64,000 nucleotides of DNA, taken from contig NW_019217946.1 in assembly GCF_002571385.2 (NCBI RefSeq), forward strand, positions 357,427 to 421,426. Reading direction: 5' to 3'. The position numbers and the translations under genes were made by a program. Below the pieces are notes generated by a model, which was not told where the DNA came from, did not search any database, and saw only the letters and a program-made list of their open reading frames with translations. Positions 12,933 through 63,259 of the stretch are shown here, piece by piece; the stretch's first letter is position 1, and each line of letters opens with the position of its first letter. This stretch comes from Stylophora pistillata (lineage: Eukaryota).

Positions 12933-15107
12933 GTTTAATGCAACGATTATGCTACTGGTTTTTCTAGACGCATCGATTTCCTTTATTGGTGAGTTGATGA
13001 GTAGGCGAAAAAAAATTCAGTTTGAAAGTAGAAAGGTTACCATTGAGATCATCTTCAAATCCAATTTTGCTCGTGTTCGAACAGTTTCTTGACCAAAAAT
13101 TTCCAGAGGCACATAGGTTGTTTCATAAAGATAAAAAAGGTGAAGTATTTCAGCTCCCTTTATTCCTGGCTTGTTTAGTGTAAATTTGATTGTAAATGAA
13201 ATGGAGCCTGACCGTGGATGACCAGTTGGTATCACTTTATTGCGTCTTAGTGGACATCTATGTCTCCTCCATGGAATGAAAAAAATTCTCAGCCAAGATC
13301 CAGCCCTCTCGAATAAAAATGTTGGTCTTATCTCGCTATTTTGCTTGTCGTCAAGATATAAGCTAACAATAACACAACTTCATCAGGAAATACTTCTCAT
13401 TAAATCAAGTATTCTGTTCTTTGTCACTCTCCTTTTGCATTGTCTCCATTACTCTTCACCCATTTCCGCCCCTTGTAATCGTTATTCAAAGCCAAAGCAC
13501 AGCCCTTTAATCAAGGCAAATACTTGGTGAATGGAATAATGGATGTTCTACCTAATGGTAACTTGAAACTTCGCCTGGATGCAAGAAAGGAAAGCAGCGG
13601 AGCTGGTGAACAACCCCTAAACCCCACAACTGTGTTACCTACAAGTGGCTACACGACTGAACCTCCCACTGGGGGAGCTACCAGCACGGGAACAGCACCA
13701 ACCCCCGGGTCGACCATTGGATTCAGTACGACGCCTGGGTCCAGTATATCCCCCGGAATAAGAAATCCAGGTACGACGGCTCTTCAAAGGCGTAAAAATA
13801 TTTTGCTGATAAAATTATAGTGTCAGTATCTACAATTGATAGTAATAGGACTGAAAATAAGTTATTGTCAGAAATATTGTCAGATTTTCTTGTTTTCACG
13901 TCCTCACATTCTAAGAATAACATTCAAACAAGAAAGGTCCTCTCTTACACTCGAGTAATGCTTGAAAAATTATATATTGAATATCGCAGATGATCATTTT
14001 AGGGACGGTCATCGTCTCCATGTTTGAAAGAATTATATAACACTCTTTAAGTTTCCCGAAAGCAGCAAACGTCGATAAATGGCGATCAGCCACCAAATTA
14101 GGCAGAGGGAGAGCTACAAAAATATGGTCCTTGCCATACGAAATTAAAGACAGTACAAGTTTTCATCTACAGGCGGCAATCCAAGACGGGTTGCACTAAA
14201 CTTGCACAACGACCACCGTCGAGTACACAATGCTCCAAGAATGAGGCTCACTTCCCAACTAAACGATGATGCTCAGAGGTATGCAGACAAACTTGCCCGT
14301 GAAAGTTTGTTTGTTCATGACCAACAAAATAGAAGGCAAGGAGAAAATCTGAGATTGCAATGCGCCCCTGGAAGTGATGTAGATCTGGTTAAGAAGGCTG
14401 TTGATGCATGGTAAGCCTCACCAAAGGCAATGCAAATTTAGTAAAATGTAATTTGGAGTCGACTTTTAGTGATCTGGAGTAAAGCTTAGAGCAAATCCCT
14501 AGTGAGTGCCGAATGTATTCTGGGATTGAATTGGTTTTGCTTATGTTTGCCTAATCATTTTTTCTAAAAACCTCACTAAAGCCAACTAGGAAATAGTCGC
14601 TGAGCATTACGTGAAGTACCAGTAAATACTGACCAAGAAAACATGCATTGAATTTTCTGCCGATCTATTACTGTTGTTGTTTTGATGTTGTCTATAAATA
14701 GATAAATAAATGCCATTGCAGTGCCATTAGAATAGCTTCCATCCGCTCTCTCATTTTTCAGGTATAACGAGGTTTGTACGTACAATTTCGACAATCCTAG
14801 AGCAAGTTCTGGCGTCACCGGTCACTTTACTCAGGTCGTGTGGAAAAAGAGCACCAGGCTTGGCATTGGGCTCGCCAGAGGAAGCTACGCATTTGGTTCA
14901 CACTTATTTGACAACTGCCTGTTTGTAGTCGGTCGGTATCTAAAACCAGGAAACGTATTTGGTGCCTATCAACAGAATGTTTTGAGGGGCAGCTTTAACA
15001 GGCAGATGTGTCGTTCTTCAAACACTTCCGGAAAGAGAAATAAGCTGTTCCGAAAACTAAATTCGGGAGAAAGTAAAAGAAAGAGCACCTTAGAGATGGT
15101 TCTATAA
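12933..15107 (+). CDS. CAP-1: secreted CAP/SCP (GAPR-1-like) protein with N-terminal hairpin motif and T/P/G linker
   Basis: Exons 12933-12988, 13492-13770, 14173-14410 and 14762-15107 join in frame with GT-AG sites. Signal-like FNATIMLLVFLDASISFIAKA. CAP motifs LHNDHRRVH, GENL, WYNEVC, GHFTQVVWK and VVGRYLKPGN. Confidence 0.85.
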
Positions 15108-16364
15108 CTAAGGGAAAACCATATTATATGATGCACTTTAGGAAGGATGGAATAAAGTCATCTGTGGCAAATAGATAATGGCTATGCTTACCTTGGTTTG
15201 ATTTTATTAACTAGCAATCAAAGAAGAGTTCATAGAAACAGTTGGTCGGTTAATATTATTGGATTCACAACATAGGGAAATATGGCCGCGCATGAAAGAG
15301 AATTTATCTCATGGCTCTTTCGAGGAAATCGAGATAAAACTGAAGAATAAGCAAAAGTTTTGGAATATCTACATAAGGTGACATAAAATTCAACCACAGT
15401 TTATAAGTAAAACAAAATAATGTGGAAGGACACGGCCATGAACACCTTTCAGTGTTCAATACTTAATCGCCTTGAACTTAATTACTAAGAACTGTGATAT
15501 CAACGGAATCACTTTCACAAATTTACTGTAAACCAACATAGTGCATTGGATAAGAACGGAGAATCCTGATTAAAATCGCTTGACCAATCAAAGTGAAACC
15601 AATGGAAGATGGGACTTTGTACCCTGATGAGTTGGGTAAGAAGATAAGACTGACTACAATGATTTCCGCTTCATTTAAGCCAGGGTGGAAAACGTAAGAT
15701 AATCGTAAGCTTACGTGCATACAAAAAGAAATAAAGAGTTCATTATCCTGCTCTGTGTATGTTAAAGATCCGGAACTATGCATCATCATGAAATTCTTCA
15801 CATCATATTACCGAGGTTATTGTCCTCTACATCGATATGAAATGGGAAGGCTTATGTCATCTAAATACAGGTGGGTAGTTTCAATTCTTTAGCTATGGGA
15901 GGATTACGACTGACAGGAGGCCAAAAAAGCTCCACTCTCAACTTCGTATTTCTACTCCTTTAAAACCTAGAAAATGTAAGAAACGTTTGAAAAACTAGCA
16001 AACCTATCTTTTGAACAAAATGATTTGGTGATGTAACTCCATGATTGACGCCATCAATTTTCCATTGAAGAGTATAGATCTACGTGTATCTACTGACTGT
16101 GCGTCGCAGCTTGATTTTCAAAAGTTATAAACCCTCGATTTTTGAACTTTTTGGGAGAGAAATATTGTTTTTATTCCTTGCCTCTTCCTTTCAATTTGAA
16201 AACCTATTTTTTTTCTGCTATTTTTATTCATCAGGAATCTAAAGAATTTATTTTGGTTAAATTATCATGGCCTTGTCGTTTGGTTAGGTTTGTTTTCACT
16301 GAGAGGTAAGATCTTTTGCTCGTTGGAAACAATCATTTATCATACAACTAAGAGACTTTCAGAC

Positions 16365-18480
16365 ATGATTGTCATGGGCGTTTTTATATTCTTATATTTG
16401 TGTTCCACAGTAAGTGCAGGCTCGTTGCGAATTCCTGTAGAGGGACAGCTCATATACGACAGTTCATCAAAGATGGTAGATCTCTGTCTGTCGGCGCACA
16501 TGTGTCCACCGTGTGTTTTTGACACTCTTTGTAACCAGGGCGGAATTTATCCCATGCAAGGAACAAATGCTCTACCTTACTCCAGCAACGCTTCGCCGTT
16601 AACCTCTGTTTCAACGACCCCAACATCACCGTTAACCTCTGTGTCATCGACCCCAACATCTTCGAGTTCGGAGCTAGCCTCGACAGAGTCTCCTTCAACC
16701 ACCGAAGCTACCACGCAGATTATTTCCACGACGGAGGAACCGGCTAGTAGTACAACAGCATCAACCCCTTCCAGCAGCAGCATCACTGATCACACCCCTT
16801 CATCGGTGTCTGAGACAACTTCAATCACAGAGGCTACAGAAACAACCGAAAGTGGTAATCTAAGTCCTACAACATCGGTCACGGCCTCAGCAACAACGGT
16901 CGGTGGGGGAATTGACGCAGAGACAGGTAATTACATGGTTTTTATCGGACAAAAATCTGATATAGGGAACTAAGTATGAGAAAATAATCGGGACCTACTG
17001 GTCTCCCTGACAATTGAAACGATCCACTTTCCCATTTTTTTCTGCACTGGTCTGAAAGAGGGCTGAGATACAGGTTCGAGTTATAACCGCCGCCCAGTTA
17101 GCTCAATGGATAGAGCGCTGGACTGTTGTGCGGGAGGTCAAGGGTTCGAGTCCCGGCCGGACCAACACTCAAGGTCTTAAAATAATTGAGAAGAATTTGC
17201 TACCTTTCTATAACATCAAGAAATGGTCAGATATTCTAGTCTTCTCGGATAGGGACGAATAAATGGAGGTCCCGTCTCCTGCAGGGCTGGGGGAAGGAGA
17301 CGTTAATTTCCCACACACGAGATTACTGTGTGATGGATGTCCTCCCCTTGGGTGGGATGGTTGGGTTTACTTGACCCGCAGTAATTGGCGCAAGCTGTTG
17401 CGGTGTCCCCTGGCGAATCAAATAAATTAAAATTAAATTAAATATGTACAACTACGTATTGTAGTGCTTTCTGTTTCGGGGGGAGGCTCAATGTCCAATT
17501 CATTCGTTATCAACGGGTATACCAAAATACCAGCGTTCAATCGTTTTGCAGTGTCTTACATAGCCCGATTCGTCCTTTTCAACCTTTAAAGTGCGAAGTT
17601 TCTATAGCTTACATCAGTTCCTTTTTGCTTTATTAACATATAGATGTTCACCAAAAGGGATTGGATAAGCACAACTATTATCGCAAAATACACAACTCAC
17701 CTGCACTAAGTCTGAGCTCACAGTTGAACAGTGATGCCCAAAAGACTGCTGAAAGAATTGCAGCTCAGGGTAAACTTGTCCACACTGACGACTCGGAGTT
17801 GGGTGAAAAAGGAGAGAATCTTGGAAAGTTGTGCGTAACGGACGAAACTCTAGAAGAGGTTATAGTTAAAGTTGTTGAGAGATGGTGAGTAGATTATGGG
17901 GCTGGTAAAATCCTATGAAGTTCTCAAAAAAAAAAACAAATTAATGCTGCAAAAATGCAGGAAAAGCAGGAAAACTTTGGTTTTACATCACTGTGCTATG
18001 CAATTGGCCTAGAGAAGCAAAACAATATATTGTGTAGTTTTATAATTTTTTTTATCAATATTTAGGCAGAAAATTAATTTCTGGTTAATTCTGGAACAAC
18101 AAGGTCTGAAAACTAATGCAAAAACATTTTTTTTACTTTCTTTTTCGTTGTACTGAAGGTATAATGAGGTTTGTAAGTACGATTTTAGCAAGCCAGAAGG
18201 GTCACAGTCAACTGGACATTTTACACAGCTCGTTTGGGCCTCGACTAGAGAACTCGGTCTCGGATGGGCTAAAAAAGATGAAGGTGACTTCCCTTGTTAC
18301 TATGTAGCGGGAAGATACAGCCCCGGTGGAAATATTGACAACAGATTTGAAGAAAACGTCATGAAAGGAAGTTTCGACTCCTCATACTGTTCATCAAAAA
18401 GGCGAACTCTTAAACGTTTGAGAGACCCGGTCTGGCCAAAATGGTATAATGTTATCGTAAGAAGTCTCCACCATTACTAA
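16365..18480 (+). CDS. CAP-2: secreted CAP protein with Cys-rich mini-module and S/T/E mucin-like linker
   Basis: Exons 16365-16926, 17644-17884 and 18159-18480. Signal MIVMGVFIFLYLCSTVSA. CAP motifs HNYYRKIH, GENLG, WYNEVC, GHFTQLVW and VAGRYSPGGN. Confidence 0.88.
17086..17420 (+). mobile_element. tRNA-derived SINE in a CAP-2 intron
   Basis: Same family as 4193. B box GGTTCGAGTCC and an A-rich (TTAAA)n tail. Confidence 0.8.
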
Positions 18481-19210
18481 TTTAGTCATACTTTAAAAAC
18501 TCGTTTTATTCCAGTTTGAGATGCTTCGGTATCCCTTCTTACAATTGTCATGATAAGGGAAAAAGGAGCGAGGTACAACTCTATAATTTTACACAATCAT
18601 TCATGTCGACATTACATATCACAAGCCAGACCAAGTATGGACCCTTGTGGGACGCCAGACTTTATTTGCTCAGAAGCAGACTGTGCGCTGCCATAGACAA
18701 CAGATTGACATCGATTTATAAGATAGTTCTCAAACCACTTCAGTTCTTGGTTTTGGATGTCAAACCCAGGCAATTTCTTTATGAGAAGTTGGTGATTCAT
18801 CGGTCGAAGGCTTTTCGAAAGTCGACAAACACCGCTGCCGTAACGCGACCATCGTCTATACCTTTCCTAATACAATCCGTGAAATATGTTACCGCGTCCT
18901 GGGTAGAGTGATTTTTCCGAAACCCGCACTGGAAGGGAGATAGCTGGTTGGACTTTTCTAAATGATGGAGTAGCTGAATTTCCACGGCTCTTTTAAGGAT
19001 CTTCGAAGCCACCGGTAAAACGGAGATGGGACGGCAGTTATCCATACACGTATTATCCCCATCTTTATATAGGGTCACCACCCTTGCATATTTCCATTCC
19101 TCCGGTACAACTGCAGAGGAAATCGAGAGATTTATTATGGCTGTTAGAGGAGCTGAAATGCTTGAAGCCGCATCCTTTATTAGACGGGCTGGAATTCCGT
19201 CAAGTCCTCT

Positions 19211-25451: not shown

Positions 25452-25532
<81 letters not shown>

Positions 25533-27740
25533 CCCAGGCAAAGTGCACACGAACAAGTAGGTTTTTTAATGCATCGCAAGGAGCGAATAAACATCGTTCG
25601 TGCACATTGCCCATGGTATTATGTTTTTATTTCGCATGTCAATGACTGGAAGTGAACAATTATGACAGGAACGATAGTATGTATGAAATAAATTCCTAAT
25701 CCAAAAAGGCTGCTGATCCTATTGCTACTTGTTTTGTTGTTGTTGTTGTTGCTTTTTTTTTTTTTACTAGACATTACGGCTGTTTCCATTTGCTAGAAAC
25801 GAAGCCATGAAAATGCATCTATGAGTAGCATCAAAAAAACTTCAGTTGTAAGTGTGCGTACTTTTAAAATTCGTAGAATTTACAATCCAAGGAAATGGTT
25901 CATATGAAGCCGGGAAACTAAAAGTGGACCTTCACCTCGAGTCGACTATGAACATAACATCTGAAACAACTGTCCCCCCAACTTCTATCATGACAACGCT
26001 ACCTCCAACCACAAACGCGACAACTATTCCTCCGACGTCGTCGTCGAGAACATCTCCAGCTGCATCTGAAACAATTCCCCCTTCTACACTACCTCCAACA
26101 CCAGGTCCTACAGTAAATTCTACGACGCTTGGGCCCGAGACAGGGGCCTCATCGAGACCCACAAATATTACGTCAACTCCAACAACCTTACCGCCAACAG
26201 CTGCAAAGGGTGACAACATAACAAGTACCACAGGGCAACCGACAATAAGTGCGGCAGTGAATGTCACTACCCCAACACCTGCGCCAGAGTATAATGATGG
26301 AAAACCTTTAGCAAACTCCAAGCAGTGTAAGTAAAATATTCAACCCACATTAGATATCAATTTTAAAAGAGAACGACAAATTAAAAACCCCACCGCTTTT
26401 AGCCTAATTGTTACCTTCCAGTGTGTTCTCGTTAACGTTTTCATTCCTCATCAATAGATGAATCCTTTTTAAAATACTTGTGTTTCGGGCAGTAACAGCT
26501 GTAGTCACTGTGGTGCTACTAAGGTTAGATGCATAGAAGTTGCTATGGCATCGACAAAAGAGGTGGCAAAGGTAGCAATAGCTATCAGGGGTTTGCACTC
26601 AAAAGCAGCAGTGATGGGAGGGGGGGTATTGAAGAGAGTGGCAATGATAGCGGAGGTAGTAATAGTATTAGTGACAGAGGTGAGTAGCACATTAGTGACA
26701 GCTCAGCGGAAGTGACAGTGGAAGCAAAGGGCGACGTAGAGGCCGCACCGGAAGTGTGTACACAAGTCTGATATAAATGGGGTTGTGATAAGGACAATGA
26801 ATTTGAACGACTCCCTAACATAAGCTTGGATTTAGTTTCAGCTTTAGATCGTACAGCCCTCGAGCTGCACAATTACTATCGCTCGATTCACGAGGCGCCT
26901 CTCCTAACCCTTGATGAAAACCTCCGAAAAGATGCTCAAGATTATGCTCTTAAAGTTGCTAGGAGCCAAATGCTACGGCCAGAACAAGATTTTGTGCTCA
27001 ACTCTAAAAATGAAGGAGAAAACCTGGGATTTAGATGCTCGACAATACGACCTGATCCTGAGAAAGCCTTGAGACAGATAATGAAGCGGTGGTAGGAAAT
27101 TCTCAGAGTGCTAACTCTCTTTACTCTTATCTTCTCTTACTTTTTCTCGTCTATGATCCTAGCTTTCCTCTCATTTTCGATATTTTGCGACTCGGCAGTG
27201 TAAATTGAACTGTCACTAGTAGAATTATTTCTCTGGTTCCCCCTCTTTATTAATGATCAAATCCCTCATTAGAAACTTTGTAATGTTACCGTGACAACCA
27301 AAACTACTATTTGGGAAAATTCCTGATCTACAGAAAAAAAATGTGCGAATGCTTTTTTGGACATTTGTGGCATAGTACAGTGTCGAGTGTTTTGTTCATG
27401 AAGTAACACTCAAATTATTCATTCAATTTTTTTATAACTGATCTTCAGGTATGACGAAGGCTGCCAATACAACTTTCAAGCACCACCAACGGACAAGTAC
27501 TCGTTCAGACACTTCACACAAATGACATGGAATGGAAGCAGAAGGCTAGGCGTTGGCATCACCTATGGGAAAATTAACAATCTGCATTGCTTGTACTTTG
27601 TCGCACGTTACAGACCCCGTGGAAACCTGGGAAACAAGCTCATATATATCAATAATGTCAAGAAAGGAGTTTTCGATTCGTCTTTTTGCAGACCAATAGT
27701 AAATCAAGTGCCTAACCAAGAGGTCATTTTAAAAGAATAA
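24872..27740 (+). CDS. CAP-3: secreted CAP protein with T/P mucin-like linker
   Basis: Exons 24872-24926, 25877-26326, ~26842-27091 and 27449-27740. Signal-like MTGPFIFLTMIQAIYA. CAP motifs LHNYYRSIH, GENLGFRC, WYDEGC, HFTQMTW and VARYRPRGN. Confidence 0.85.
25460..25528. repeat. (GA)n microsatellite
   Basis: Directly visible. Confidence 0.95.
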
Positions 27741-29387: not shown

Positions 29388-31928
29388 ATGAAAGCTTTGC
29401 AACTGTCTGCCATATGCCTTTCCATTGTCATAAGCATTTACTGGAACTATGGTGAGTGATTGAACCTTGAAAACAAACTGTTTCTTATCAGGCGCTCTTC
29501 AGCAAAACCTCGACTATAAACCCCGAACAAAAACTCAACCTTTGGATGACGGTTGTTTACATTGTGCCCCTTACTCATTCTATTTGCCCCAATAAGAACA
29601 GGAGGTTAAAAGGGAGATATATACAGGAATTAAGTTGTTCAGCTAGTCTTTGCATTATGGACGCTTCCATGCTACACAAAATGGAACAACGACGAAAATG
29701 AAAAACTGGTATTAATATAGTGTAAGTTTATAAAATTCACATCATAAAGGCAGGAGGAAAACCACTGCGTCCTGTGGAGGATTGGCTCTCGGGAAAAGCG
29801 AGAACCATATTCAGTTGACAGCAGAGTGGTGTAGTTTGAATTGAAACAATTCATATTCGTAGTCGTAAGCTCGTTATATATTCCATCTTTTACTTTTAAG
29901 TCCAAACAGGAAAACGAGGCCCAGTGAAGGATACTAAAAAGGACCAGTTCATGATAACAGGAAAGGGAACAACTAAAGGGGGCAAGACGAAGATAATCGT
30001 TTACATGCAGACTACTGGTGAAAATCCAATCAATCCAGCACTAGGTAAGAAACAAGGGAAGAAAGCTTCTAATGTTACACCTGATCATTCTGGTAAACTG
30101 AAACTCCGAGTCCGTCACCTACCACAACAATACCACTGTCTGCTCAGGTCACAAGTGCATCACCAAAACCAAAGAAAGGGAAACACTTTTAAGTCACACC
30201 AAAACACCACCAACAGGTGGCAAGGCCTAGCCAAAATCGGAGATTTGCACCGGGTCGGAGTGTGAAAAACTCCAGCGCAAAAAAGTTGGTATCAAGCTCT
30301 TTAAATAATGCAGCGAGGGCTACTGTGGACTCTGCTAAAGCTACATCAACACCCTCTGCGATTATCAAGTCCTCGTCAATGACCAGTGCTGGTTTCCTTT
30401 CCTCTTCTAACTCTGCTAAATCCACCCCTGCGCCTCAGTCCAGCGGAGTGGTGCCGGTAAAAAGCAAACAAGCCGCTACCAGTGGCTCACCCGGACCTTC
30501 GCCGCAACCTTCAAGAAAGCAACCTACAACCAGTAGTTCGTCGGCATCTTCACCTCCACCCGATCAGTCTTCGAGTCAGGCTTCAGTGCAGCCTAGTGCT
30601 ACAAATAGTACAGCTATCCAATCTTCATCTGTATCAAGTTTAGCTCCTTCTTCATCTTCACCTCCAGCAGTAATCTCTTCAACTTCAGTTTCCCTTGACC
30701 CAAGTGCGACGAAAAATGCAGTTCCTCAAGTTTCATCTCTCGCTAGTGTTGATCCTTTCTTGACTCTGTCACTTGCGATTAAATCTCCTAGTGCAGGCGC
30801 ATCAAGCGCTGCGGTTACCCAAACTTCCTCTCTTCCAGGGTCCAGTGCTTCTTCCTCTCCTGGATCAACCATTACACCCGCAAAGTCTTCCCCAACAAAC
30901 CCCAACAACTACTCCTTACTTTACATTTAAGCGATAACTTTCCTCGTGATTATTCTCCTTTTATGGTCAGTCAGTTTATATATCTGCACCTATGTACGCT
31001 ATTTAAACACTTTTAAGTCTCGAACTGATCGTTTCCCCCAGTTTCCCGAGACGAACACATAGCTCTGGATGAGCACAACTTCTTCGAGGCTTGCATAAAT
31101 CAGCGCCACTCAGTCTTAACAAAGATATGGTATTTGAAGCACGCGAGTACGCCAAAAAAATTTCTGTCGCTGGAAATCTTTCACAAGGATGAATCGCCAG
31201 ATAAACTGAAACAAATGGGTGAAGGAGAAAATATTGGACTGGTGTGTTCTAAGGTTGAACTATCAGCTGCGCGAGTAGAGAGGAAAGTCGTAGATACCCG
31301 GTAAGGTTTTATACAAATAATCTTGCCTCACTGGGATTCTGTTGTTGTATTTCATCAAATATCATTGAATTTACATATACACATGGTGAGAGACAATAAC
31401 ATATGAAAAACTATTACGTTAATCTATGGACGCAATGCTCACTTACTCGGCATACGGTACACAAAAATGCTTTTCAGAGATCAGGATTAGTTCGCAACAA
31501 ATTCAAGAAGTTCAAATAATTTTTAAGTGTCTGCATGTGAGTACGTACAAAAGGGAAATTCATGTCTACCGGGAAAAAGCAACTCGATTTTAAATTCATT
31601 CCCTCTCTTATTCTACTTGTAGGCACAGAGAGGCGTGTAAATATAACCTCCAAGATCCTGACCCGATGTCCAAAAAAGCAGCTCATTTCACACAGCTTGT
31701 GTGAGGTGCTTCTAAACAACTCGGCGTTGGTGTTGCCGTGACAAAAAATGGGAAAAAGAATTGTGTATACGTTGTTGCTTGATACAAGCCTATGGAAGCT
31801 CGAAAGACCCAAAGAGCCTTAAAACTAATTTCAAAAAAGGATTATTTGATGCTTCCATTGACTGTGCTGCCAGCTCAAAGAAAAAGTTTTTCATTGCCGT
31901 GAAAGATCATTGCTTCTTATCAGCTTAG
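29388..31928 (+). pseudogene. CAP-4: unprocessed CAP pseudogene with Ser-rich linker
   Basis: Exons 29388-29451, 29901-~30920, 31042-31300 and 31623-~31928. Frameshifts in exons 2-4. The conserved intron-split Trp is changed to Arg. In-frame TGA in HFTQLV* and VVA*YKP. Confidence 0.85.
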
Positions 31929-32066: not shown

Positions 32067-33920
32067 GTGCAGCTCTTACGTATTGCTTTAAATCTCAGCC
32101 TCGTTGCCTTAAGCTGGCACGAAGTGAAAGACTTAATTTTCTATTTCAAGTGTCGCGCTCGCCACTACACCTTACCCATAGCTGATTATGTCAGGCCCAA
32201 AGGCACCCGTCTTACTCATCATAGCTCTGATCAAGACGTACTAATTCCTAAGTGCCGTACAAAGCTTTTTCAATTTAGTTACTTTAATCGTGTCGCTAAA
32301 CTCTGGAATACCTTACCTGTATCCACTCGTATTATTAGTTCTCTCAATCAGTTTAAATCTCACGTACTCCAACGCTATTCGGCTGCTTTTCGTACAAACT
32401 ATGACGTCACTAACTTCAACACCTGGAAGTCGATCTNNNNNNNNNNNNNNNNNNNNNNNNNNNNNNNNNNNNNNNNNNNNNNNNNNNNNNNNNNNNNNNN
32501 NNNNNNNNNNNNNNNNNNNNNNNNNNNNNNNNNNNNNNNNNNNNNNNNNNNNNNNNNNNNNNNNNNNNNNNNNNNNNNNNNNNNNNNNNNNNNNNNNNNN
32601 NNNNNNNNNNNNNNNNNNNNNNNNNNNNNNNNNNNNNNNNNNNNNNNNNNNNNNNNNNNNNNNNNNNNNNNNNNNNNNNNNNNNNNNNNNNNNNNNNNNN
32701 NNNNNNNNNNNNNNNNNNNNNNNNNNNNNNNNNNNNNNNNNNNNNNNNNNNNNNNNNNNNNNNNNNNNNNNNNNNNNNNNNNNNNNNNNNNNNNNNNNNN
32801 NNNNNNNNNNNNNNNNNNNNNNNNNNNNNNNNNNNNNNNNNNNNNNNNNNNNNNNNNNNNNNNNNNNNNNNNNNNNNNNNNNNNNNNNNNNNNNNNNNNN
32901 NNNNNNNNNNNNNNNNNNNNNNNNNNNNNNNNNNNNNNNNNNNNNNNNNNNNNNNNNNNNNNNNNNNNNNNNNNNNNNNNNNNNNNNNNNNNNNNNNNNN
33001 NNNNNNNNNNNNNNNNNNNNNNNNNNNNNNNNNNNNNNNNNNNNNNNNNNNNNNNNNNNNNNNNNNNNNNNNNNNNNNNNNNNNNNNNNNNNNNNNNNNN
33101 NNNNNNNNNNNNNNNNNNNNNNNNNNNNNNNNNNNNNNNNNNNNNNNNNNNNNNNNNNNNNNNNNNNNNNNNNNNNNNNNNNNNNNNNNNNNNNNNNNNN
33201 NNNNNNNNNNNNNNNNNNNNNNNNNNNNNGTGCAGCTCTTACGTATTGCTTTAAATCTCAGCCTCGTTGCCTTAAGCTGGCACGAAGTGAAAGACTTAAT
33301 TTTCTATTTCAAGTGTCGCGCTCGCCACTACACCTTACCCATAGCTGATTATGTCAGGCCCAAAGGCACCCGTCTTACTCGTCATAGCTCTGATCAAGAC
33401 GTACTAATTCCTAAGTGCCGTACAAAGCTTTTTCAATTTAGTTACTTTAATCGTGTCGCTAAACTCTGGAATACCTTACCTGTATCCACTCGTATTATTA
33501 GTTCTCTCAATCAGTTTAAATCTCACGTACTCCAACGCTATTCGGCTGCTTTTCGTACAAACTATGACGTCACTAACTTCAACACCTGGAAGTCGATCTG
33601 CTGCAAATGCAGTAGGTCACGTGATCTTCTATTAGTTGGTAACTGCTGCTATTAGGACTTTCTATCGGTCGCATGAGGGATTTATTCCTATCGTTTTCGT
33701 TTTTTCTTTTATTATTTTATATACTTTTTTATATACTTTTTACACTGTCTATTGTTTACATAGTTAATATTTGTTTATTTCTCGTACGGACACACTTAAT
33801 TTGGAGCCTCGCTCTGTTGTGTGTCCCGCACCCTTGTCCTCCGTTCTCTTCTTTGTCTTGTTCATATGTGTATTTTAGTCCTTTTAGTATTGAAAGTATG
33901 GTGAAAGCGATTAAATAAAT
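32067..33920 (+). mobile_element. 3' end of a LINE (RT C-terminus and 3' UTR), duplicated on both sides of an N gap
   Basis: CRTKLFQFSYFNRVAKLWNTLP..SLNQFK motif. 32068-32436 is nearly identical to 33230-33599. A-rich end near 33915. Confidence 0.75.
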
Positions 33921-53690: not shown

Positions 53691-55336
53691 AAAAATTCTG
53701 CAATCAGCGTCAGTGGCACTTCATACTCCTCGATGACATTCACTCAACGGACTTAAATAGAGGAGGACTTCATCTTGGGGAGACAGGTATTGCCAAAATG
53801 TATAACAACTTCGCGAATAAATTACATGAATGTAGTTGACCTACTGGCCGTCTGTTCAATTCAGAGCGTAATCGCGACCTTGGAAATCCAATCGTTTCTC
53901 ACCAATTTGAATCATAACATGGAAAACAGCATAATACAGGTATAATCTTATCTTGTTGATAAATGTTTAACCAATTTCCAGCAGCAAACTATCAGTTTCA
54001 CGCCGAATCAAAGACGTTTTTTATGGCTTGAAAAACATTACGGAAACTGTTGATTATGAAAATTTTCTCAGATAAGCCTTGTTGTTAAACTCGAGAATAG
54101 ACAAATAGAATAATATCATGCCCATAAATTAAAGCCAGAACAAGTTTACAAATTTTTCATTGAAATAAAGAGAAATACTGAAATTGTAAAACTTACTGGG
54201 TTGCTTTCTTTGTTGACATCGACCCAGTACTAGTGATGAACTGTTAATGAGAAAGGCAAATGAATAAAGTTAAAATTTCCTCTAACAAATCGTTTATTTT
54301 TGCTTAGCTATCTCACAGACATCCTCTGTTAACAATAAACTGTCAAAATTGCCAACAATTTTCGCTCAAAGTAAGTTAAAATGGCTTTGTTTTGTTAAAC
54401 TTTACTCACGTTCTAGCCGCGACGGCAAAATGGCTTTCTTCACGTCACAGACAAGGCCGCGACGGCTGGAAACCTCACAACGACAGCAACCGGAAGTAAT
54501 TCTGGCAGTAACTTCATTTCCGCTTGCCGTCCCAGATGTCTGCCGTCGTAGGATCTTAAGCTCGTTATTATTTTACAGTGCTACCTAACAGGGTAAATAT
54601 CACCTACTACTGCTGGCAACAAACTACAACTGACTTCTGGTAAGAGATTTGAAGAACATCATCTTTTAAAGAAGAAAACCCAGCACTGTTGTGTCACTGT
54701 TAAGGTTAAGGTCAAATCAAGTTGTCAATGAGTAATTCTGATTACAAGGCGAAAACTGTCAGGATTTTTTTTAAGTGCTTAGAGATCGTTCGCATATTGA
54801 TTTATAAAATTCCCTTATAAGATTTAGTTAACCTGGTACACTATTAAAAAGGGTTTTTGATATTTCAATCGAGGATGAGGATATAGAGGCAAAAATAAAT
54901 TGGTTAGACTGGTCATGAGACTTGTTAAGTACGATCACTCCGCCGTCTAAAATCTCGCGCCCATCAGAATAGACTAAATGTACTTTTTAACATCCACATT
55001 GGTGAAACTGGCCTTGTTCCCAATCCGTAGAACGGTGAATATCCAAAGAAGTCGTCACACAGAGCAATTGATTTTACCTTTTAATTTCACGTTGGAATGA
55101 ACTACGAAGTCTCAAACGATCTTTTTCTTCCTTCGTCTCTTACGTGTCAAAAGTGCGCCCGCGAAACAACAAAGCGGTAAATTTGTCAAAATCACCGGGG
55201 CAACGAGTTAACCATTAAATGGCTAAATAATTACAATTTTTTTATTCTTAACAGGCTTTATCTTTATATCTAAAGACCTCCCTCGGTAGGTTCAAATTGA
55301 AAAATCATGTAAAGATTGCTCACTCACATCCCGGGT

Positions 55337-55915: not shown

Positions 55916-57403
55916 NTGCTGTTTCTATTTTCTTCATTAAATGAAGAAATTTTCTGGTCGTCAAGCTGTTTTTCTTCCTTCGATTCATCTAATGAACTTG
56001 GATCTATATTTGCCAGCCATTCTGACTCTTCGTCGTCGGAAATATGATTCAAATTGTCCGCCATTTTTTTTTTTTTTTTCGTAACTACAATCCAATTCTT
56101 CGCTTGCGCGATGCGAGAAAACCTGTTTAACCTGTACTTTACAATAGACGAGTACAAATACCGCGTGATATTTGCACTCGTCTATGGTGTTATTTGTTCT
56201 CGTCTAGGTGTAATTGGATAATAAAGGTACTTATTGCAAATAGGGCAATGAGGAGGACTTGGTCAAATATTTCAAAGAGCTTCTTTTCCTTTCAGATCTT
56301 TAAATATAAATCTGAAAATGATACATTCCCCGCCTGCGTTGCCACCATCCAGGAATAAGGTGGCGTTCAATGCTGGGTTATGACAATTTCGCTAACGTCG
56401 CCTCATTTAACAAAGAATACAATTATTGAAAACTCTGAGCATTGCGTGATAGTGGCCTGTGCAAAGAAACAGGTCGCTCATACCACCGGGTATGGCTGGT
56501 GACCGGGTACCCACGATGCACTTACTTGTACCAGTAAAAAAAAGAAATAAATAACGCTATTCATTGGGTCAAGAAATGAAGCATCGCTGAAAGGCGGAGC
56601 CTTTCTCCGCCCCATTACCATCTTACCGTTGCCCAATCAACCAGTTTTCTTTTATTTCCCTACCAATTTACGAGCACAGTTTTGTCCAGGGTTGATCAAA
56701 GGATAAGAAGTGGTTCATTATAAAGGTGTTGATCCTAAATATCTGCCTTTGCAAATCATATAAATTTTTTTTTTTTTTTTTTTTTTTTTTGCTCTTTCCT
56801 TCTCTATTATTTTCAAGGTACAACGAAGTCTGTCGTCCGGGATACGACTTTTATATCCCCTCTTTTAGCGCTGGAATAGGCCATTTCACTCAAGTAGTGT
56901 GGAAAGAAAGCATAGTTCTTGGCATTGGAATAGCTTCAGGAAAGAAAAACGGCATGAACTGTGCATATATTGTGGCTATATATAGACCGGCTGGGAACAT
57001 GGTAGGAGAGTTTACCCAAAATGTGCCGGAAGGAGACTTTAATAAGGACAGCTATTGTGCAACAGTTAAGAGGCATACGCTCTTGGACAAGCAATGGAAG
57101 GCAGCTTTCGTTAACAATTCAAATGCCACAACGGGGTCGGCTGAGCTTCGCGGCCAATTTGAGGAACAATAAAGCAGCAAGAAAGAAAATATTGCCACAA
57201 AAAGACAAAAACAATCAGCGATTATTGTTATGCTATTTCGTTTTCATTGTTTCTCTTATACTTTGAAAACACATACAAATAAAAGCGTAAACAAACCATG
57301 GCAACCACTGCAAGACAAACCAGGACAAGACTTTGCTCGCCCGACATCTATTTTATCTTACACTTTACCAACAATGTATCGAGAAGCCCAGCTAAAACAG
57401 GAA

Positions 57404-59053
57404 TTAACCATGTTTGTGATGAGAAATATGACCTTTCTTTTTGCTGTTTAACAGCCCGAGGTCTTCGCCTCGTGGCTTCTTAAACCCAGTATGTTTAGCG
57501 TTCAAGCCATCCCTGGGCGGAGGAACTACAATGAGAAGAGGAAAGCAAACAGAAGCAATTAGCTCTCTTTAAGACTTACACTTTCCAGAGTTTATGGAAA
57601 CTTTGATTTTCCACCTTGGAATGCGAAATAAAGATTAAATGAATAGCCATTCAGTTATGCCATAAAACCAAACCAGTTTTTGTATTAGTAGTCATTTTAC
57701 ATCATTAGCACTAGTAATCGCGTAATTTCTCGTGCAATTTGGAATAGTGAAGCATCAGTATTTTTTCCAAAGGCTAGAAACATTGCACGAGCCATAAAGC
57801 GTGTTCAATTCACAGTCTAAAATATCAAGAAGTTTTTCCTGAGGCAATTACTACAATTAAGGAGAAATTCCCGGTGTCTCCGCCAATCAGCACTCTTGCT
57901 CTCTATGTTATAACTAGTGTAACACAAAATAACCAAAAAAATTTGACAAAGGCATCATTTCAGCAGATTTACAGCGCAAAAAAGCTAGCCTCGTGTTCGT
58001 AACCACCAGATGCAAATCGACTTGTTTATTAGCCTTATCGGATGCCAATTCATTACGTCGAGGCAAAGAAATCGAAACAACATACCTTTCCATCCAATTG
58101 GCTGTTGCTTCCCATCTCCCAGACTTTCAGTCCCCACCGTGCCTCCCATTGTGGGAGAGGTAGTTGGCTCTAGTGCGGCACCAGCTGCTCCCTCTGCAGG
58201 ATTACCAATCCGACATGTCAAGAGAACATGAGAAAAACGTTTGTGCTAGTTGGTTCTTTGTATTTATAGAGGATAAGTGAAAGCAAAAAGCCAAAATATA
58301 AAGTAAAACAGTTTACCAGTACCTCCTCCTAGACCTTCTGATCCCTCTGCGGGAAGAGCCCCTCCCTCCTGGCCACCTACTCCTTCTACTGGACCTTCTG
58401 GAGGAGCAGGTATACCTGCTCCAAATCCTCCTTCCGAGCCTCCTACTCCTCCTACTGGGCCACCTTCGCCTCCCACTGGGGCTCCTAGACCTCCTGCTGC
58501 GCCTCCCACTGGGGCTCCTATACCACCTGCTGCACCTCCTAGCCCTTCTGCTGGGCTAACTGCGCCTCCAACTGGGGGCGCTAATCCTCCTACTGGGCCA
58601 CCTACTCCTCCCACTGGGGCTCCTATACCTCCTGCTGCGCCTCCCACTGGGGCTCCTATACTACCTGCTGCACCTCCTAGCCCTCCTGCTGGGCTAACTG
58701 CGCCTCCAACTGGGGGTGCTAGTCCTCCTACTGGGCCTCCTAACCCTCCTACTGGACTGACTGCGCCTCCTCCGAGGCCACCTGCAAGGCTTCCTACACC
58801 TTTGCTGCTTTTACTCTTACCAGATAAGCCAATTGCCTTACTTGCTGTGCCAACCACCTTACCTGCTACCTTTCCTACCTTTGTTCCCTTCAAAGCTATG
58901 CTTCCAACTTTCGCTGCCAGGCCTAATAATCCATAAGGTTTCTGTTGGCTACCCACCTCTTCCGCCGGACCTCCTCCTGCGGGTCCTACCCCTCCTGCCA
59001 TCCCCTCATCGGGTCCTCCAGCTCCCGTTCCCATCCCACCGATTTGTCCTACC
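57404..59053 (-). CDS. Gly-rich elastin-like protein, copy A (5' end in gap)
   Basis: Exons 59053-58317, 58193-58086 and 57525-57404, nearly identical to copy B. Confidence 0.7.
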
Positions 59054-59726
59054 NNNNNNNNNNNNNNNNNNGATTGTAAAGCGTTTAGAGGCTTGCAATA
59101 ATTTATTATCATTTATTCAACGGATGGGTGAACTAATCTTGATCATTCATGATCCCTCGAAAGATCCTGTTTATTTCTACTATGTAAGTCCTAGCCAGAA
59201 TTAGATAGGGTCCACTGTTTTAAATTCGTCCTGAGCATCTCCTCTGCTAGGCTCTATCAATTTGGTTTAAGGTAACGTTCTGTATAAAACTATGAGTGCA
59301 TATTTCCATTGCCGTCCTTGAATAGATATAAACGAGCGTCAGGAATGGCTTTATGATCTTTCGCCAATCATTAGTCACATGATAGTCACGAGACCGGTCC
59401 TGGAGAATTGATCCCTCTGTGGTATTAAGAAATAAAAATGAGAGTAACTGTATAACACTTCTGGATAGTCCAGCTTGGCGCATGAATTCCCCCCACCCTC
59501 CCCCCTTCCTTCCACTGCCCTTTTAACCACCACCTCTGCAAGGTCAACACCACTTTATTACTTATTTGTTAGAACTTTCGTAACAGTTCGTTTTCTACAG
59601 TCTAGTTATATGAAGGAACTCTCCATCATATAAATTACATAGATAGGGAGCTACATCATAACGATCTTTTGATTCCAGCAAGCCAGCATGTCTTCACACC
59701 AGCATATCTTCACTTTATCTTTTTAG

Positions 59727-61281
59727 TGTTAGCCGAAGACGAACAACAAGGTTTAGCAGCTCTCAATGAATTTCGACAAGTACATGGGGTTCCTGCGATG
59801 ACACTGGACAGAGAAATGTGCGATGAAGCTGGTCAGTACGCCAGGCGGCTTACACGCATGGGTACTCTTAAGCATTCAAAGGATGAAGAAAGACATGGCC
59901 AGGGAGAAAATCTATCAATGGGATGTTCATCAGACGCTTCACCGCAAACCGCTGAGCAAGCCGTGAAAAGCTGGTGGGCTTTTTTTTACTTCTTTAATCA
60001 GGTTTTCGAGGTGTTGTCTCGAAGTTTTACCTCTTAATTAAATGCTCCAAATCAGATACAACGGATCGTGCATCATACGTAAAATGCTCCAAAGACAGAT
60101 GTCAATTATCAGGGTAACTGAAATCTCATTACAGGGACTCGTTATCACAACCTGGACTAATTCTTAAAAACTTCGTCTTAGAAATGCTCCGGCTCAGCGT
60201 TTTAGAAAAAATGATTTGCGACGGTACTAAACGAAGGACTCTATACCAAAGACTTGCTTAAAGCAGAGAACTTATTTTTAGAACCAGTTTGAAGTGAGAG
60301 GGGCCAAAAGTTTGGAGATTCGATCCCTTCATGTATAGGCATTTATTCCAAATAGGGCAATGAGGAGGACTTGGTCAACTATTTCAAAGAGCTTCTTTTC
60401 CTTTCAGATCTTTAAATATAAATCTGAAAATGATACAGTCCCCGCCTGCGTTGCCATCATCCACCAAGGTGGCGTTCAATGCCGGGTTATGACAGTTTCG
60501 CTAACGTCGCCTCATTTAATAAAGCACCCAGTTTTTGAAAACTCTGAGCATTGCGTAATAGTGGCCTGTGCAAAGAAACAGGTAGCTCATACCGACGGGT
60601 ATGGCTGGTGACCGGGTACCCACGATGCACTTACTTGTACCAGTAAAAAAAAATAAAAATAACGCTTTTCATTGGGTCAAGAAATGAAGCATGGCTGAGA
60701 GGCGGAGCCTTTCTCCGCCTCATTACCTTCTTACCGTTGCCCAATCAACCAGCTTCTTTTTTTCTTTTATTTCCCTACCAATTTACGAGCACAGTTTTGT
60801 CCAGGGCTGATCAAAGGATAACAAGTGGTTCATTATAAGGTTGTTGAGCCTAAATATTTGCCTTTGCAAATTATATAAATTACTTTTCCGTTTGTTTTTT
60901 TTCTTCCCTTCTCTAACATCTTCAAGGTACAACAAAGTCTGTCGTCCGGGATACGACTTTCATACCCTCTCTTTCAGCGCTGGAACAGGCCATTTCACTC
61001 AAGTAGTGTGGAAAAAAAGCATAGTCCTTGGTAATGGATTAGCTTCAGAAAAGTAAAACGGCATGAACTGTGCGTATATTGTGGCTAGATATAGACCGGC
61101 CGGGAACATGATGGGAGAGTTTACCCAAAATGTGCCGGAACGAATCTTTGATAGGGACAGCTATTGTGCAACAGTTAAGAGGCATACGCGCCTGGACAAG
61201 CAATGGAAGGCAGCTTTCGTTAACAATTCAAATGCCACAGCGGGTTCGGCTGAGCTTCGCGGCCAATTTGAGGAACAATGA
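59727..61281 (+). pseudogene. CAP-9: CAP paralog (exons 3-4 visible) with premature stop
   Basis: Exon 59727-59973 (ALNEFRQVH, GENLSMGC) and exon 60927-61281, with in-frame TAA at 61054-61056. The conserved YNE reads YNK. Confidence 0.8.
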
Positions 61282-61512
61282 AGCAGCAAGAAAGAAAATA
61301 TTGCCACAAAAAGACAAAAACAATCAGCGATTATTGTTATGCTATTTCGTTTTCATTGTTTCTCTTATACTTTGAAAACACATACAAATAAAAGCGTAAA
61401 CAAACCATGGCAACCACTGCAAGACAAACCAGGACAAGACTTTGCTCGCCCGACATCTATTTTATCTTACACTATACCAACAATGTATCGAGAAGCCCAG
61501 CTCAAAAAGGAA

Positions 61513-63259
61513 TTAACCATGTTTGTGATGAGAAATATGACCTTTCTTTTTGCTGTTTAACAGCCCGAGGTCTTCGCCTCGTGGCTTCTTAAACCCAGTA
61601 TGTTTAGCGTTCAAGCCATCCCTGGGCGGAGGAACTACAATGAGAAGAGGAAAGCAAACAGAAGCAATTAGCTCTCTTTAAGACTTACACTTTCCAGAGT
61701 TTATGGAAACTTTGATTTTCCACCTTGGAATGCGAAATAAAGATTAAATGAATAGCCATTCAGTTATGCCATAAAACCAAACCAGTTTTTGTATTAGTAG
61801 TCATTTTACATCATTAGCACTAGTAATCGCGTAATTTCTCGTGCAATTTGGAATAGTGAAGCATCAGTATTTTTTCCAAAGGCTAGAAACATTGCACGAG
61901 CCATAAAGCGCGTTCAATTCACAGTCTAAAATATCAAGAAGTTTTTCCTGAGGCAATTACTACAATTAAGGAGAAATTCCCGGTGTCTCCGCCAATCAGC
62001 ACTCTTGCTCTCTATGTTATAACTAGTGTAACACAAAATAACCAAAAAAATTTGACAAAGGCATCATTTCAGCAGATTTACAGCGCAAAAAAGCTAGCCT
62101 CGTGTTCGTAACCACCAGATGCAAATCGACTTGTTTATTAGCCTTATCGGATGCCAATTCATTACGTCGAGGCAAAGAAATCGAAACAACATACCTTTCC
62201 ATCCAATTGGCTGTTGCCTCCCATCTCCCAGACTTTCAGTCCCCACCGTGCCTCCCATTGTGGGAGAGGTAGTTGGCTCTAGTGCGGCACCAGCTGCTCC
62301 CTCTGCAGGATTACCAATCCGACATGTCAAGAGAACATGAGAAAAACGTTTGTGCTAGTTGGTTCTTTGTATTTATAGAGGATAAGTGAAAGCAAAAAGC
62401 CAAAATATAAAGTAAAACAGTTTACCAGTACCTCCTCCTAGACCTTCTGATCCCTCTGCGGGAAGAGCCCCTCCCTCCTGGCCACCTACTCCTTCTACTG
62501 GACCTTCTGGAGGAGCAGGTATACCTGCTCCAAATCCTCCTTCCGAGCCTCCTACTTCTCCTACTGGGCCACCTTCGCCTCCCACTGGGGCTCCTAGACC
62601 TCCTGCTGCGCCTCCCACTGGGGCTCCTATACCACCTGCTGCACCTCCTAGCCCTTCTGCTGGGCTAACTGCGCCTCCAACTGGGGGCGCTAATCCTCCT
62701 ACTGGGCCACCTACTCCTCCCACTGGGGCTCCTATACCTCCTGCTGCGCCTCCCACTGGGGCTCCTATACCACCTGCTGCACCTCCTAGCCCTCCTGCTG
62801 GGCTAACTGCGCCTCCAACTGGGGGCGCTAGTCCTCCTACTGGGCCTCCTAACCCTCCTACTGGACTGACTGCGCCTCCTCCGAGGCCACCTGCAAGGCT
62901 TCCTACACCTTTGCTGCTTTTACTCTTACCAGATAAGCCAATTGCCTTACTTGCTGTGCCAACCACCTTACCTGCTACCTTTCCTACCTTTGTTCCCTTC
63001 AAAGCTATGCTTCCAACTTTCGCTGCCAGGCCTAATAATCCATAAGGTTTCTGTTGGCTACCCACCTCTTCCGCCGGACCTCCTCCTGCGGGTCCTACCC
63101 CTCCTGCCATCCCCTCATCGGGTCCTCCAGCTCCTGTTCCCATCCCACCAATTTGTCCTACCGGTCCCTCGATGTCAACTTGTAGATTTAATCTGGTTGC
63201 GCCGTTTTTTTTTATTGTCCCAGTGCCAGAAATAGTTAATTCAGAATCTTGGCCCACCT
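61513..63259 (-). CDS. Gly-rich elastin-like protein with the CAP-cluster N-terminal motif but no CAP domain, copy B (first exon not identified)
   Basis: Exons 63259-62426, 62302-62195 and 61634-61513 are joined by phase-1 GT-AG introns. The last acceptor has CTAAT plus a long pyrimidine tract. The protein ends ...KKKGHISHHKHG*. Confidence 0.75.

Follow-up and report, generated by a model that had tools for sequence, protein, structure and literature searches.

The CAP domain of the coral proteins studied here is closest to that of human GAPR-1 (GLIPR2; 1smb, E 2.3e-28, Foldseek TM 0.85), and yeast Pry1, of the Pry1-3 family, is also among its closest relatives. GAPR-1 is a cytosolic protein associated with Golgi membranes, and has neither a signal peptide nor an N-terminal extension. 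Pry3 carries its CAP head on a long low-complexity stalk, an arrangement shared by the coral proteins, and is anchored by its C-terminus. Neither GAPR-1 nor the Pry proteins bear the small N-terminal hairpin that we describe.

The hairpin itself invites comparison with other systems. The foldon of phage T4 fibritin, which is C-terminal and viral, is a 27-residue beta-hairpin trimerisation unit that is stable only through association. The likeness is a functional analogy, in that both hairpins have about 25-27 residues and sit terminally on an extended chain. There is no sequence or significant structural match between them, and the coral hairpin is N-terminal whereas the foldon is C-terminal. 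The secreted 'bouquet' proteins of the collectin, ficolin and C1q type are made of an N-terminal association segment, a stalk and a globular head. The coral order of N-terminal segment, Gly-rich stalk and globular head is analogous, but the coral proteins lack cysteines in that region, have no Gly-X-Y periodicity, and end in a CAP rather than a lectin or C1q head. The stem hairpins of beta-barrel pore formers of the alpha-hemolysin and aerolysin types resemble the coral hairpin in their amphipathic alternation and strand length, yet they are embedded in a large globular protomer, and we detected no homology between the two.

Bacterial Ig-like (PF16403), Calx-beta, PKD, YDG and GIN/DUF2807 repeats share the pattern h-x-h-x-G-[ST]-G-[ST]-h with the coral segment. 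Their matches had 4-17 bits per stretch, covered the profile partially, and drew their significance from summed repeats. This likeness is convergent beta-strand grammar and not kinship. Resilin, elastin and cnidoin-like proteins have Gly/Pro-rich short repeats, as do the Gly-rich gene and many of the linkers described below. The likeness of the Gly-rich gene to these elastomeric proteins is in composition only, and the comparable sequences of other corals are CAP linkers, not separate proteins.

The CAP gene array

The window, i.e., the whole stretch of 64,000 nucleotides analysed from the stony coral Stylophora pistillata, holds a tandem array of genes encoding secreted GAPR-1/Pry-like CAP proteins. 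In the majority of these genes a signal peptide is followed by a Cys-free segment of about 25 residues, a disordered linker of low complexity, rich in Gly/Pro or in Thr/Ser/Pro, and the CAP domain. The hairpin segment and the linker share a single symmetrical phase 1-1 exon. The CAP1 exons scored 27.4 and 21.4 bits with the Pfam CAP model PF00188 (cut-off 21.1), which is also in the precomputed annotation of proteins P0001, P0027, P0028 and P0094. The HNxxR, GHFTQVVW and YxPxGN signatures are present in CAP1, 2, 3, 5, 6 and 7, and degenerate in CAP4 and CAP9. The AlphaFold2 (AF2) model of P0027 had pLDDT values above 90 across the CAP domain, an alpha-beta-alpha sandwich, and Foldseek matched it to 4aiw, 1smb and 5jys (E 1e-12 to 1e-13, TMt 0.85-0.90). 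Strict orthology with GAPR-1 (GLIPR2) was rejected because P0001, P0027, P0094 and P0120 have hydrophobic first exons resembling signal peptides (assigned by eye), followed by hairpin and linker.

CAP4, CAP8 and CAP9 are decaying genes. The CAP exons of CAP4 are broken. CAP9 consists of exons a and b only (59729..61278, + strand), with an in-frame stop in exon b and a substitution of the conserved His of 'HNxxR', and no motif exon was found for it. ORFs of a Harbinger/PIF-type transposase (52429..53836, + strand; PF13359 DDE_Tnp_4, E 3.9e-10) are inserted beside the CAP8 fragment. None of the CAP exons found lies on the minus strand.

Membership of the motif family

The preliminary description had proposed one N-terminal module in eight genes of the window. 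The eight peptides were indeed read verbatim in CAP1 (13521-13583), CAP2 (16431-16496), CAP3 (25879-25941), CAP4 (29948-30010), CAP6 (42495-42560), CAP7 (49815-49883) and CAP8 (51526-51594), all on the + strand, and in the Gly-rich gene (63171-63239, - strand). The pattern in which the module was written exceeded the expectation from shuffled sequences, with four matches against 0.03 expected for its strict form and five against 0.62 for a looser one, and these matches fell solely on the proposed sites. CAP4 is among the strict matches.

We ran leave-one-out profiles against all 2761 six-frame pieces of the window. The left-out member was the best non-seed match for CAP3 (E 1.2e-4), CAP7 (4e-3), CAP8 (3.5e-4) and the Gly-rich gene (1e-5); CAP1, CAP2, CAP4 and CAP6 were missed. 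When the profile was built from the exons of other corals only, the top four matches in the window were CAP6 (3.7e-13), the Gly-rich gene (6.3e-7), CAP8 and CAP7. A profile of 12 sequences excluding CAP1, CAP2 and CAP4 (A2) ranked CAP4 seventh of the 2761 pieces, precisely at the proposed residues (per-sequence P 2.9e-4). With the same profile CAP1 ranked 1097th (P 0.21) and CAP2 obtained no score.

These scores point to one statistical family comprising CAP3, CAP6, CAP7, CAP8 and the Gly-rich gene, and weakly CAP4. Its members combine the profile match with a place after the signal peptide, a phase-1 acceptor and a low-complexity linker immediately downstream, a combination again weaker in CAP4 and lacking in CAP1 and CAP2. 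The proposal of a common module thus stood for the former genes and fell for the latter two, whose segments are, by their sequences, positional analogues only. The CAP exons of CAP1 are themselves real; the CAP2 segment shares its exon with the signal peptide and precedes a Cys-rich stretch. In CAP3 the motif opens a Thr/Pro-rich linker exon, and the orthologue P0082 turned up in the protein library search. The module is unannotated, as had been stated: none of the eight motif exons had a Pfam match at E up to 1, and the best PDB sequence match to the hairpin was not significant (E 0.53).

Exon structure of CAP6, CAP7 and CAP8

The exact mapping of P0001 (PFX24968.1) placed the signal-peptide exon of CAP6, which ends in intron phase 1, at 41322..41373, and its motif-plus-linker exon (246 nt, phase 1-1) at 42475..42720. 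The CAP-domain exons a (42969-43229) and b (44148-44936, with a long tail) follow on the same + strand.

CAP7, also on the + strand, was mapped with P0027 (XP_022791759). It has a signal-peptide exon (49394-49439), a mini-exon of 36 nt in phase 1-1 (49525-49560) that isoform P0042 lacks, a motif-plus-Gly-rich-linker exon of 174 nt in phase 1-1 (49792..49965), and CAP exon a (50307..50550). NCBI gives it the CAP exon b at 56818..57169 (+ strand), but this assignment is uncertain because transcript contig L001 matches CAP7 exons 1-4 at 97% and that exon b at only 72%.

CAP8, which had been counted as a gene of the array, turned out to be a frameshifted fragment (51508..52063, + strand) inside the annotated last intron of CAP7. 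It consists of a motif pseudo-exon, with a phase-1 acceptor like those of CAP7 and the Gly-rich gene, and a truncated piece of exon a (51932-52063). The linker shifts to another frame, the motif frame carries a stop, and similarity to exon a begins only at 51856.

The Gly-rich gene and the assembly gaps

The readable Gly-rich exon (GLY-2; 62426..63259, - strand, 834 nt, phase 1-1) starts with the motif and continues into a Gly-rich region of in-frame tandem repeats of 21 bp and 138 bp. A second copy (GLY-1; 58317..59053, - strand) has its 5' end cut by an assembly gap (59054..59071) at the expected position of its motif, which is unreadable. The two copies differ by 5 mismatches in 787 nt and lie in a 2.8-kb duplication that is collinear to 59053 and ends at the gap. 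The right flank of this gap (59072-59728) has no match beside GLY-2; therefore, continuity and frame across 59054-59071 are not established and one Gly-rich motif is readable. The copies diverge by about 0.5%, equally in coding and non-coding DNA, and therefore yield no selection signal. They could be haplotigs. Two other gaps lie in the window. The one at 46177-46188 is intergenic and truncates a SINE-like repeat that does not resume in the right flank. The one at 32437-33229, downstream of CAP4, has a direct duplicate of 370 bp at its flanks (99.7% identity), which is probably an unmerged overlap. All eight motif segments are clear of the gaps.

No signal-peptide exon could be read upstream of the Gly-rich gene, and no database protein or transcript matched it. 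Its CAP-less architecture was seen only in this S. pistillata locus, where it lies inverted, tail-to-tail with a CAP gene; loci L002 and L007 have no syntenic CAP-less gene. In other corals, the Gly-rich motif exons (P0063, P0078, P0120) are followed by CAP exons, as is always the case there when the motif precedes Gly/Pro-rich sequence. Therefore, the Gly-rich gene, which had been presented as an independent type of protein, is best read as derived from a first exon of the CAP7/8 type. This motif-plus-linker exon would have been partly duplicated in inverted orientation, after which its linker would have grown by in-frame repeats. The product, if expressed, would be a headless chain with the same N-terminal segment.

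Conservation in other corals

Unlike the linker, the motif is conserved in orthologues: at least five other coral assemblies, among them Desmophyllum pertusum, encode it upstream of CAP exons (loci L002, L004, L005, L006, L007, L009, L010 and L011). Transcript contigs L001 and L008, which lack introns, have the motif spliced in the proposed frame, and protein P0094 also contains it. As had been described, the motif opens the mature protein, close behind the signal peptide; in CAP6, P0094 and P0120 it follows that peptide directly. A search of a library of 1.84 billion proteins returned 25 single-stretch matches, all of them coral motif exons, and seven multi-stretch matches to the repeat domains named above that share the local pattern.

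Predicted structure of the hairpin

The suggestion of a beta-hairpin agrees with AF2, which predicts one in CAP7 and in the Gly-rich N-terminus. In full-length CAP7 (P0027) it spans residues 35-59 with pLDDT 59-74, next to a linker below 50, and in the Gly-rich N-terminus modelled alone, without a CAP domain, pLDDT reached 76, 95 and 88 per block of ten residues. These are single-chain models, whose pLDDT is not proof of a stable fold. The segment is predicted to be a two-stranded, amphipathic, antiparallel hairpin of 10+10 residues. One side is wholly aliphatic (I7, I9, G11, G13, I15 / T21, L23, I25, V27, I29) and the opposite one polar (K, S, T, T / S, N, Q, E). The turn is charged.

Possible functions of the hairpin

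We propose, with a probability of roughly 0.45, that the hairpin is a small assembly or anchoring handle for CAP heads, and that the Gly-rich gene arose from the inverted partial duplication. The aliphatic face of a lone hairpin would not be sustainable in water, and would probably be buried against copies of itself or against a partner surface. The handle would then tether the CAP heads through flexible spacers, much as in proteins made of an N-terminal hub, a stalk and a head. Because of the aliphatic face and the apparent independence of the hairpin from the CAP domain, self- or partner-association seems the most likely role. A search for expression or localisation data found none.

A sorting determinant is the strongest of the alternatives, although an unlikely one. 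The hairpin behind the signal peptide would route the proteins to regulated secretory granules or cnidocysts, a role with precedents in POMC and chromogranin, whose sorting signals are N-terminal loops. Its position immediately after the signal peptide would fit, as would its conservation independently of the cargo, including its retention in the CAP-less copy. A GAPR-1-like protein was also detected in hemolytic fractions of S. pistillata (PMC5762905). Yet the known sorting loops differ from the hairpin, which has no cysteines, and no dibasic cleavage site follows it. Its fully aliphatic face and invariant G-x-G suit sheet packing more than recognition by a receptor, and a search for cell-type data found none.

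Less likely still, the motif may have no separate function, being a relic of shared ancestry in a still young tandem array, kept only under weak constraints such as the context of signal-peptide cleavage, with the Gly-rich copy a dead by-product. The motif is lacking or lost in CAP1, CAP2, CAP5, CAP9 and some paralogues of other corals (one in L004, one in L011), and dN/dS is only 0.5-0.7 among CAP7, CAP8 and the Gly-rich gene (33 codons). The decay of CAP8, CAP9 and CAP4 and the several open frames of the Gly-rich DNA point the same way. However, in five coral CAP6 orthologues the first ~33 residues of the exon are conserved and the next ~40 are not, the motif being far better conserved than the linker beside it. 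Column statistics showed strict amphipathy, with G11, G13 and the alternation in all 28 of the sequences compared, which represent two deep paralogue groups, and the motif is kept in Desmophyllum as well as in Stylophora. The dN/dS was 0.07-0.74 overall, and down to 0.07-0.3 within CAP6.

The assembly handle has a more specific and improbable form, in which the hairpin would be a minimal hetero-oligomerisation hub free of cysteines. The aliphatic faces might pack in a small shared beta-barrel or sandwich, mixing CAP heads on spacers of differing length into multivalent 'bouquets', to which Stylophora would add a headless elastomer-like chain. Candidate sites would be the coral surface, mucus or secretory organelles. 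The heteromeric polymer of mucus, cnidocyst or matrix envisaged in the preliminary description is speculative.

It is very improbable that the hairpin folds back against the CAP domain of the same chain, adding a strand to it or capping the binding groove, and regulates it. CAP domains do expose their central sheet and groove, and nearly all carriers have both elements, but the linkers between them range from ~25 to more than 150 disordered residues, the AF2 confidence of the hairpin is higher in the CAP-less model than in the one that includes a CAP domain, and a near-consensus motif persists in the CAP-less copy. Least probable is a membrane-inserted or free beta-barrel of hairpins from several chains, acting as anchor or pore: aliphatic and Ser/Thr/polar residues alternate along two strands of ~10 residues and the top Foldseek neighbours of the isolated hairpin are stems of alpha-hemolysin-type pores and barrels that form rings, but none is significant (every E-value ≥1.1, probability ≤0.41), an aromatic girdle is not evident, the turn is charged, there is no globular pore-former scaffold, and the matches to bacterial Ig-like, Calx-beta and GIN repeats mark the pattern as generic for beta strands.

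CAP proteins, which abound in coral genomes, are recurrently flagged in studies of stress, immunity and venom. A conserved but unannotated N-terminal hairpin joined to elastomer-like or mucin-like spacers offers a concrete and testable idea of how CAP heads may be displayed or assembled. The locus is also an example of how a symmetrical exon of phase 1-1 can be duplicated in inverted orientation, with its linker growing to form a new open reading frame. Should the hairpin prove to self-associate, it would be a new and very small assembly tag, with possible use in protein engineering.

The CAP gene array and the motif exon

The analysed window comes from the genome of the stony coral Stylophora pistillata. 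Using iterative exon profiles we identified nine CAP gene copies (CAP1 to CAP9) in it, all on the + strand, and PF00188 was confirmed with Pfam. CAP7 corresponds to XP_022791759 (P0027 in our protein set), annotated as "PRY2-like". Superposition of the CAP-domain model on human GAPR-1 and yeast Pry1 gave TMt values of 0.85-0.90. Full-length comparisons were made with the database proteins P0001 (PFX24968.1 or XP_022791747, i.e., CAP6), P0027, P0028 and P0094 and with exon-wise references, not with hand-joined spliced models.

The gene structures of CAP6 and CAP7 were obtained by mapping the NCBI proteins on the window. CAP6 has a signal-peptide exon (41322-41373, +) and an exon encoding the motif and a linker (42475-42720, +), followed by CAP exon a and then by CAP exon b plus tail. 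CAP7 has, in this order, a signal-peptide exon, a 36-nt mini-exon, the motif-plus-linker exon (49792-49965, +), CAP exon a and CAP exon b. The motif exon has phase-1 introns at both ends, and the position and phase of its acceptor are common to CAP7, CAP8 and the Gly-rich gene.

Several copies are damaged or atypical. CAP8 lies within the annotated last intron of CAP7, beside Harbinger/PIF-type transposase ORFs (52429-53836; PF13359, DDE_Tnp_4) in that same intron. The linker of CAP8 runs on in a different frame, and of its exon a only a fragment is present. CAP8 is a copy in decay or else a patchwork made by the assembly. CAP4 has broken CAP exons. CAP9 (59729-61278) shows signs of decay: the conserved histidine of HNxxR is replaced (LNEFR) and exon b has an in-frame stop near 61054. 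We looked in the window for a motif exon and any 5' exons of CAP9 and found none. CAP5 lacks the hairpin; ahead of it, a 531-codon open frame (35894-37486), low in complexity and rich in Ser, Asn and Lys, is only a candidate N-terminal exon and had no Pfam match.

Six of eight segments share the motif

The preliminary description had proposed that eight segments, those of CAP1, CAP2, CAP3, CAP4, CAP6, CAP7, CAP8 and the Gly-rich gene, share one N-terminal motif. All eight peptides are present verbatim in the window. The strict form of the proposed pattern matched four times (0.03 expected by chance) and the looser form five times (0.62 expected), always at the proposed sites. Leave-one-out profiles searched against 2761 six-frame pieces recovered CAP3, CAP7, CAP8 and the Gly-rich gene (E-values of 1e-5 to 4e-3), and missed CAP1, CAP2, CAP4 and CAP6. 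The membership of CAP6 was regained with a profile built solely from the sequences of other corals, for which CAP6, the Gly-rich gene, CAP8 and CAP7 were the best four pieces of the window. With a 12-sequence profile excluding CAP1, CAP2 and CAP4, the claimed residues of CAP4 scored P = 2.9e-4, CAP1 had P = 0.21 and CAP2 received no score. Given these profile results and the pattern counts, six segments (CAP3, CAP6, CAP7, CAP8, the Gly-rich gene and, more weakly supported, CAP4) are genuine members, and those of CAP1 and CAP2 are positional analogues only.

In transcript contigs, motif exons are spliced in the frame originally proposed. The Logan contig L001 (1039 bp) carries a single uninterrupted ORF of 306 codons. 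It matches exons 1-4 of CAP7 at 97%, and its junctions coincide with the boundaries that had been predicted. Two further intron-free contigs (L008/P0009 and P0094) also encode a signal peptide, the motif, a linker and a CAP domain. The end of L001 (552-760) matches exon b of the window (56817-57169) at only 72%, which makes the annotated 3' exon of CAP7 doubtful. The model XP_022791759 may be a chimera of two paralogues, one contributing the 5' part and the other the 3' exon; alternatively, the assembly may lack the true exon. P0042, a transcript-derived protein of the L001 cluster, differs from P0028 by lacking the 12 codons of the mini-exon between signal peptide and hairpin, an apparent skipping of this phase 1-1 exon. 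Literature and cell-atlas look-ups returned no expression data for these genes.

Conservation in stony corals

The motif is conserved in orthologues. In other coral assemblies, each genomic locus compared (L002/L010, L004/L007, L005, L006, L009, and L011 of Desmophyllum pertusum, GCA_029204205.1) has a motif exon ahead of CAP exons a and b. Tandem arrays are frequent at these loci. Two GenBank "hypothetical proteins" (KAJ7374886.1 and KAJ7374887.1) of the L011 locus (MU826827.1, 4283891-4316980) are shortened models. Their reading frames run past the motif-plus-Gly-rich exon into the following intron and end there, so that the CAP exons beyond are omitted.

The motif exon was also compared among five CAP6 orthologues: its first ~33 residues are conserved, the ~40 after them are not. 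The dN/dS of the motif is 0.07-0.5 within CAP6 and 0.5-0.7 among CAP7, CAP8 and the Gly-rich gene (small samples).

With the 12-sequence profile, HMMER was run exhaustively over 1.84 billion representatives and gave 32 matches at E up to 1e-3. Twenty-five have the motif in single full-length form: P0027 and short ORF calls, which are coral motif exons of the CAP6, CAP7 or CAP3 type. The remaining seven matches, each made up of several stretches, belong to long repeat proteins of bacteria (Ig-like, PKD, Calx-beta, YDG, GIN). We rejected kinship with them, as each stretch scored only 4-17 bits and covered the profile in part; they reflect a common β-strand grammar. A library match, the eukaryote-like P0055 (1633 aa), contains numerous tandem copies of "DVQVQKPGHT(S/T)V" with a weak match to the profile's second strand, and is probably unrelated to the family. 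Stylophora and Desmophyllum are the only species named among the carriers, hence the taxonomic range is established for stony corals only.

The Gly-rich gene

The Gly-rich exon (62426-63259, - strand, 834 nt) ends at a phase-1 donor and contains in-frame repeats of 21 and 138 bp. It stands in inverted orientation and tail-to-tail to a CAP exon b, an arrangement present twice in the window. No CAP exon was found on the minus strand of the window, and no signal-peptide exon is readable upstream as far as the gap at 63772. The N-terminus of its ORF had no match among proteins of 169-539 aa in a collection of 5.8 billion.

The gene had been regarded as a non-CAP carrier of the motif. It does carry the motif, but an independent type of protein was not borne out. 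In other corals, Gly/Pro-rich repeats continue many motif exons (P0063, P0066, P0073, P0077, P0078, P0084), and CAP exons follow such exons wherever the context could be retrieved. In L002 and L007, the DNA downstream of the CAP7-like genes holds no CAP-less counterpart. The putative gene is best read as a partial, inverted copy of a CAP7/8-type first exon in which the linker has expanded.

The two Gly-rich copies belong to a 2.8-kb duplication (56222-59053 / 60334-63162), collinear up to 59053. Within it, 57200-59053 and 61310-63162 are about 99.5% identical, with coding and non-coding DNA equally close, against a divergence of 8-10% in the neighbouring stretch of CAP exon b and intron. This mosaic points to gene conversion, a duplication of very recent date or a tandem placement of haplotigs. 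Since the non-coding flanks are equally identical, we rejected the identity of the copies as a signal of selection. An 18-nt gap (59054-59071) lies exactly at the expected motif start of the second copy (58317-59053). Collinearity stops at 59053, and the right flank (59072-59728) has no match beside the other copy. An ORF read through these Ns is meaningless.

Other assembly defects were also found. A 370-bp direct duplicate (32067-32436 / 33230-33599, 99.7% identity) borders the gap at 32437-33229 on both sides, and direct duplicates at 48839-49112 and 49098-49369 (98% identical) flank a single N; both pairs look like contig overlaps that were left unmerged, not like a biological feature. A third gap (46177-46188, intergenic) truncates one of four copies of a SINE-like repeat of about 280 bp (4189-4471; 10560-10767, - strand; 17082-17366; 45964-46176; 75-94% identity), another copy of which lies within the CAP2 intron. 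The left end of the window holds the reverse-transcriptase ORF of a retroelement (803-1918, PF00078). Nothing in the window resembled human sequence. The three gaps, which we left unfilled, do not touch the motif segments. At 50.8-63.8 kb, duplicates, single Ns and a transposon are patched together, and copy number and exon assignment in this region are therefore uncertain.

Predicted structure and possible function

The motif had been described as a β-hairpin, and AlphaFold2 predicts one. In P0027 the strands span residues 35-44 and 50-59 (pLDDT 59-74), followed by a disordered linker (60-83) and a CAP domain modelled with confidence. Modelled alone, the 70 N-terminal residues of the Gly-rich exon give the same hairpin (6-15 and 21-30; mean pLDDT of 76, 95 and 88 per block of ten) and are otherwise disordered. 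The hairpin model had no significant structural neighbour, the best non-significant ones being stems of oligomeric β-barrels. Across 28 sequences, G11 and G13 are invariant, and the hairpin has an aliphatic face (I, I, G, G, I / T, L, I, V, I) and a polar one (K, S, T, T / S, N, Q, E). The exposed aliphatic face would have to be buried.

A role as sorting signal is possible, if unlikely. That the segment has no separate function seems slightly more doubtful still. Intramolecular regulation, in which the hairpin would dock on its own CAP domain, is improbable: the hairpin is better predicted without that domain, linker length varies widely, and the hairpin persists in the CAP-less copy. A barrel-forming or membrane-inserting hairpin is slightly less probable again. 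A cleaved pro-peptide was rejected because there is no dibasic site after the motif.

With a face to be buried and docking within the molecule disfavoured, association with itself or with a partner is the most likely outcome, and the hairpin may serve as an assembly or anchoring handle (probability of about 0.45). The mixed polymers of CAP and elastomeric subunits pictured in the preliminary description are conceivable but have no direct support. Our results show that a coral-expanded family of secreted CAP proteins has a real, unannotated and conserved N-terminal element, a predicted hairpin, encoded together with its linker in a single, shuffling-prone 1-1 exon.
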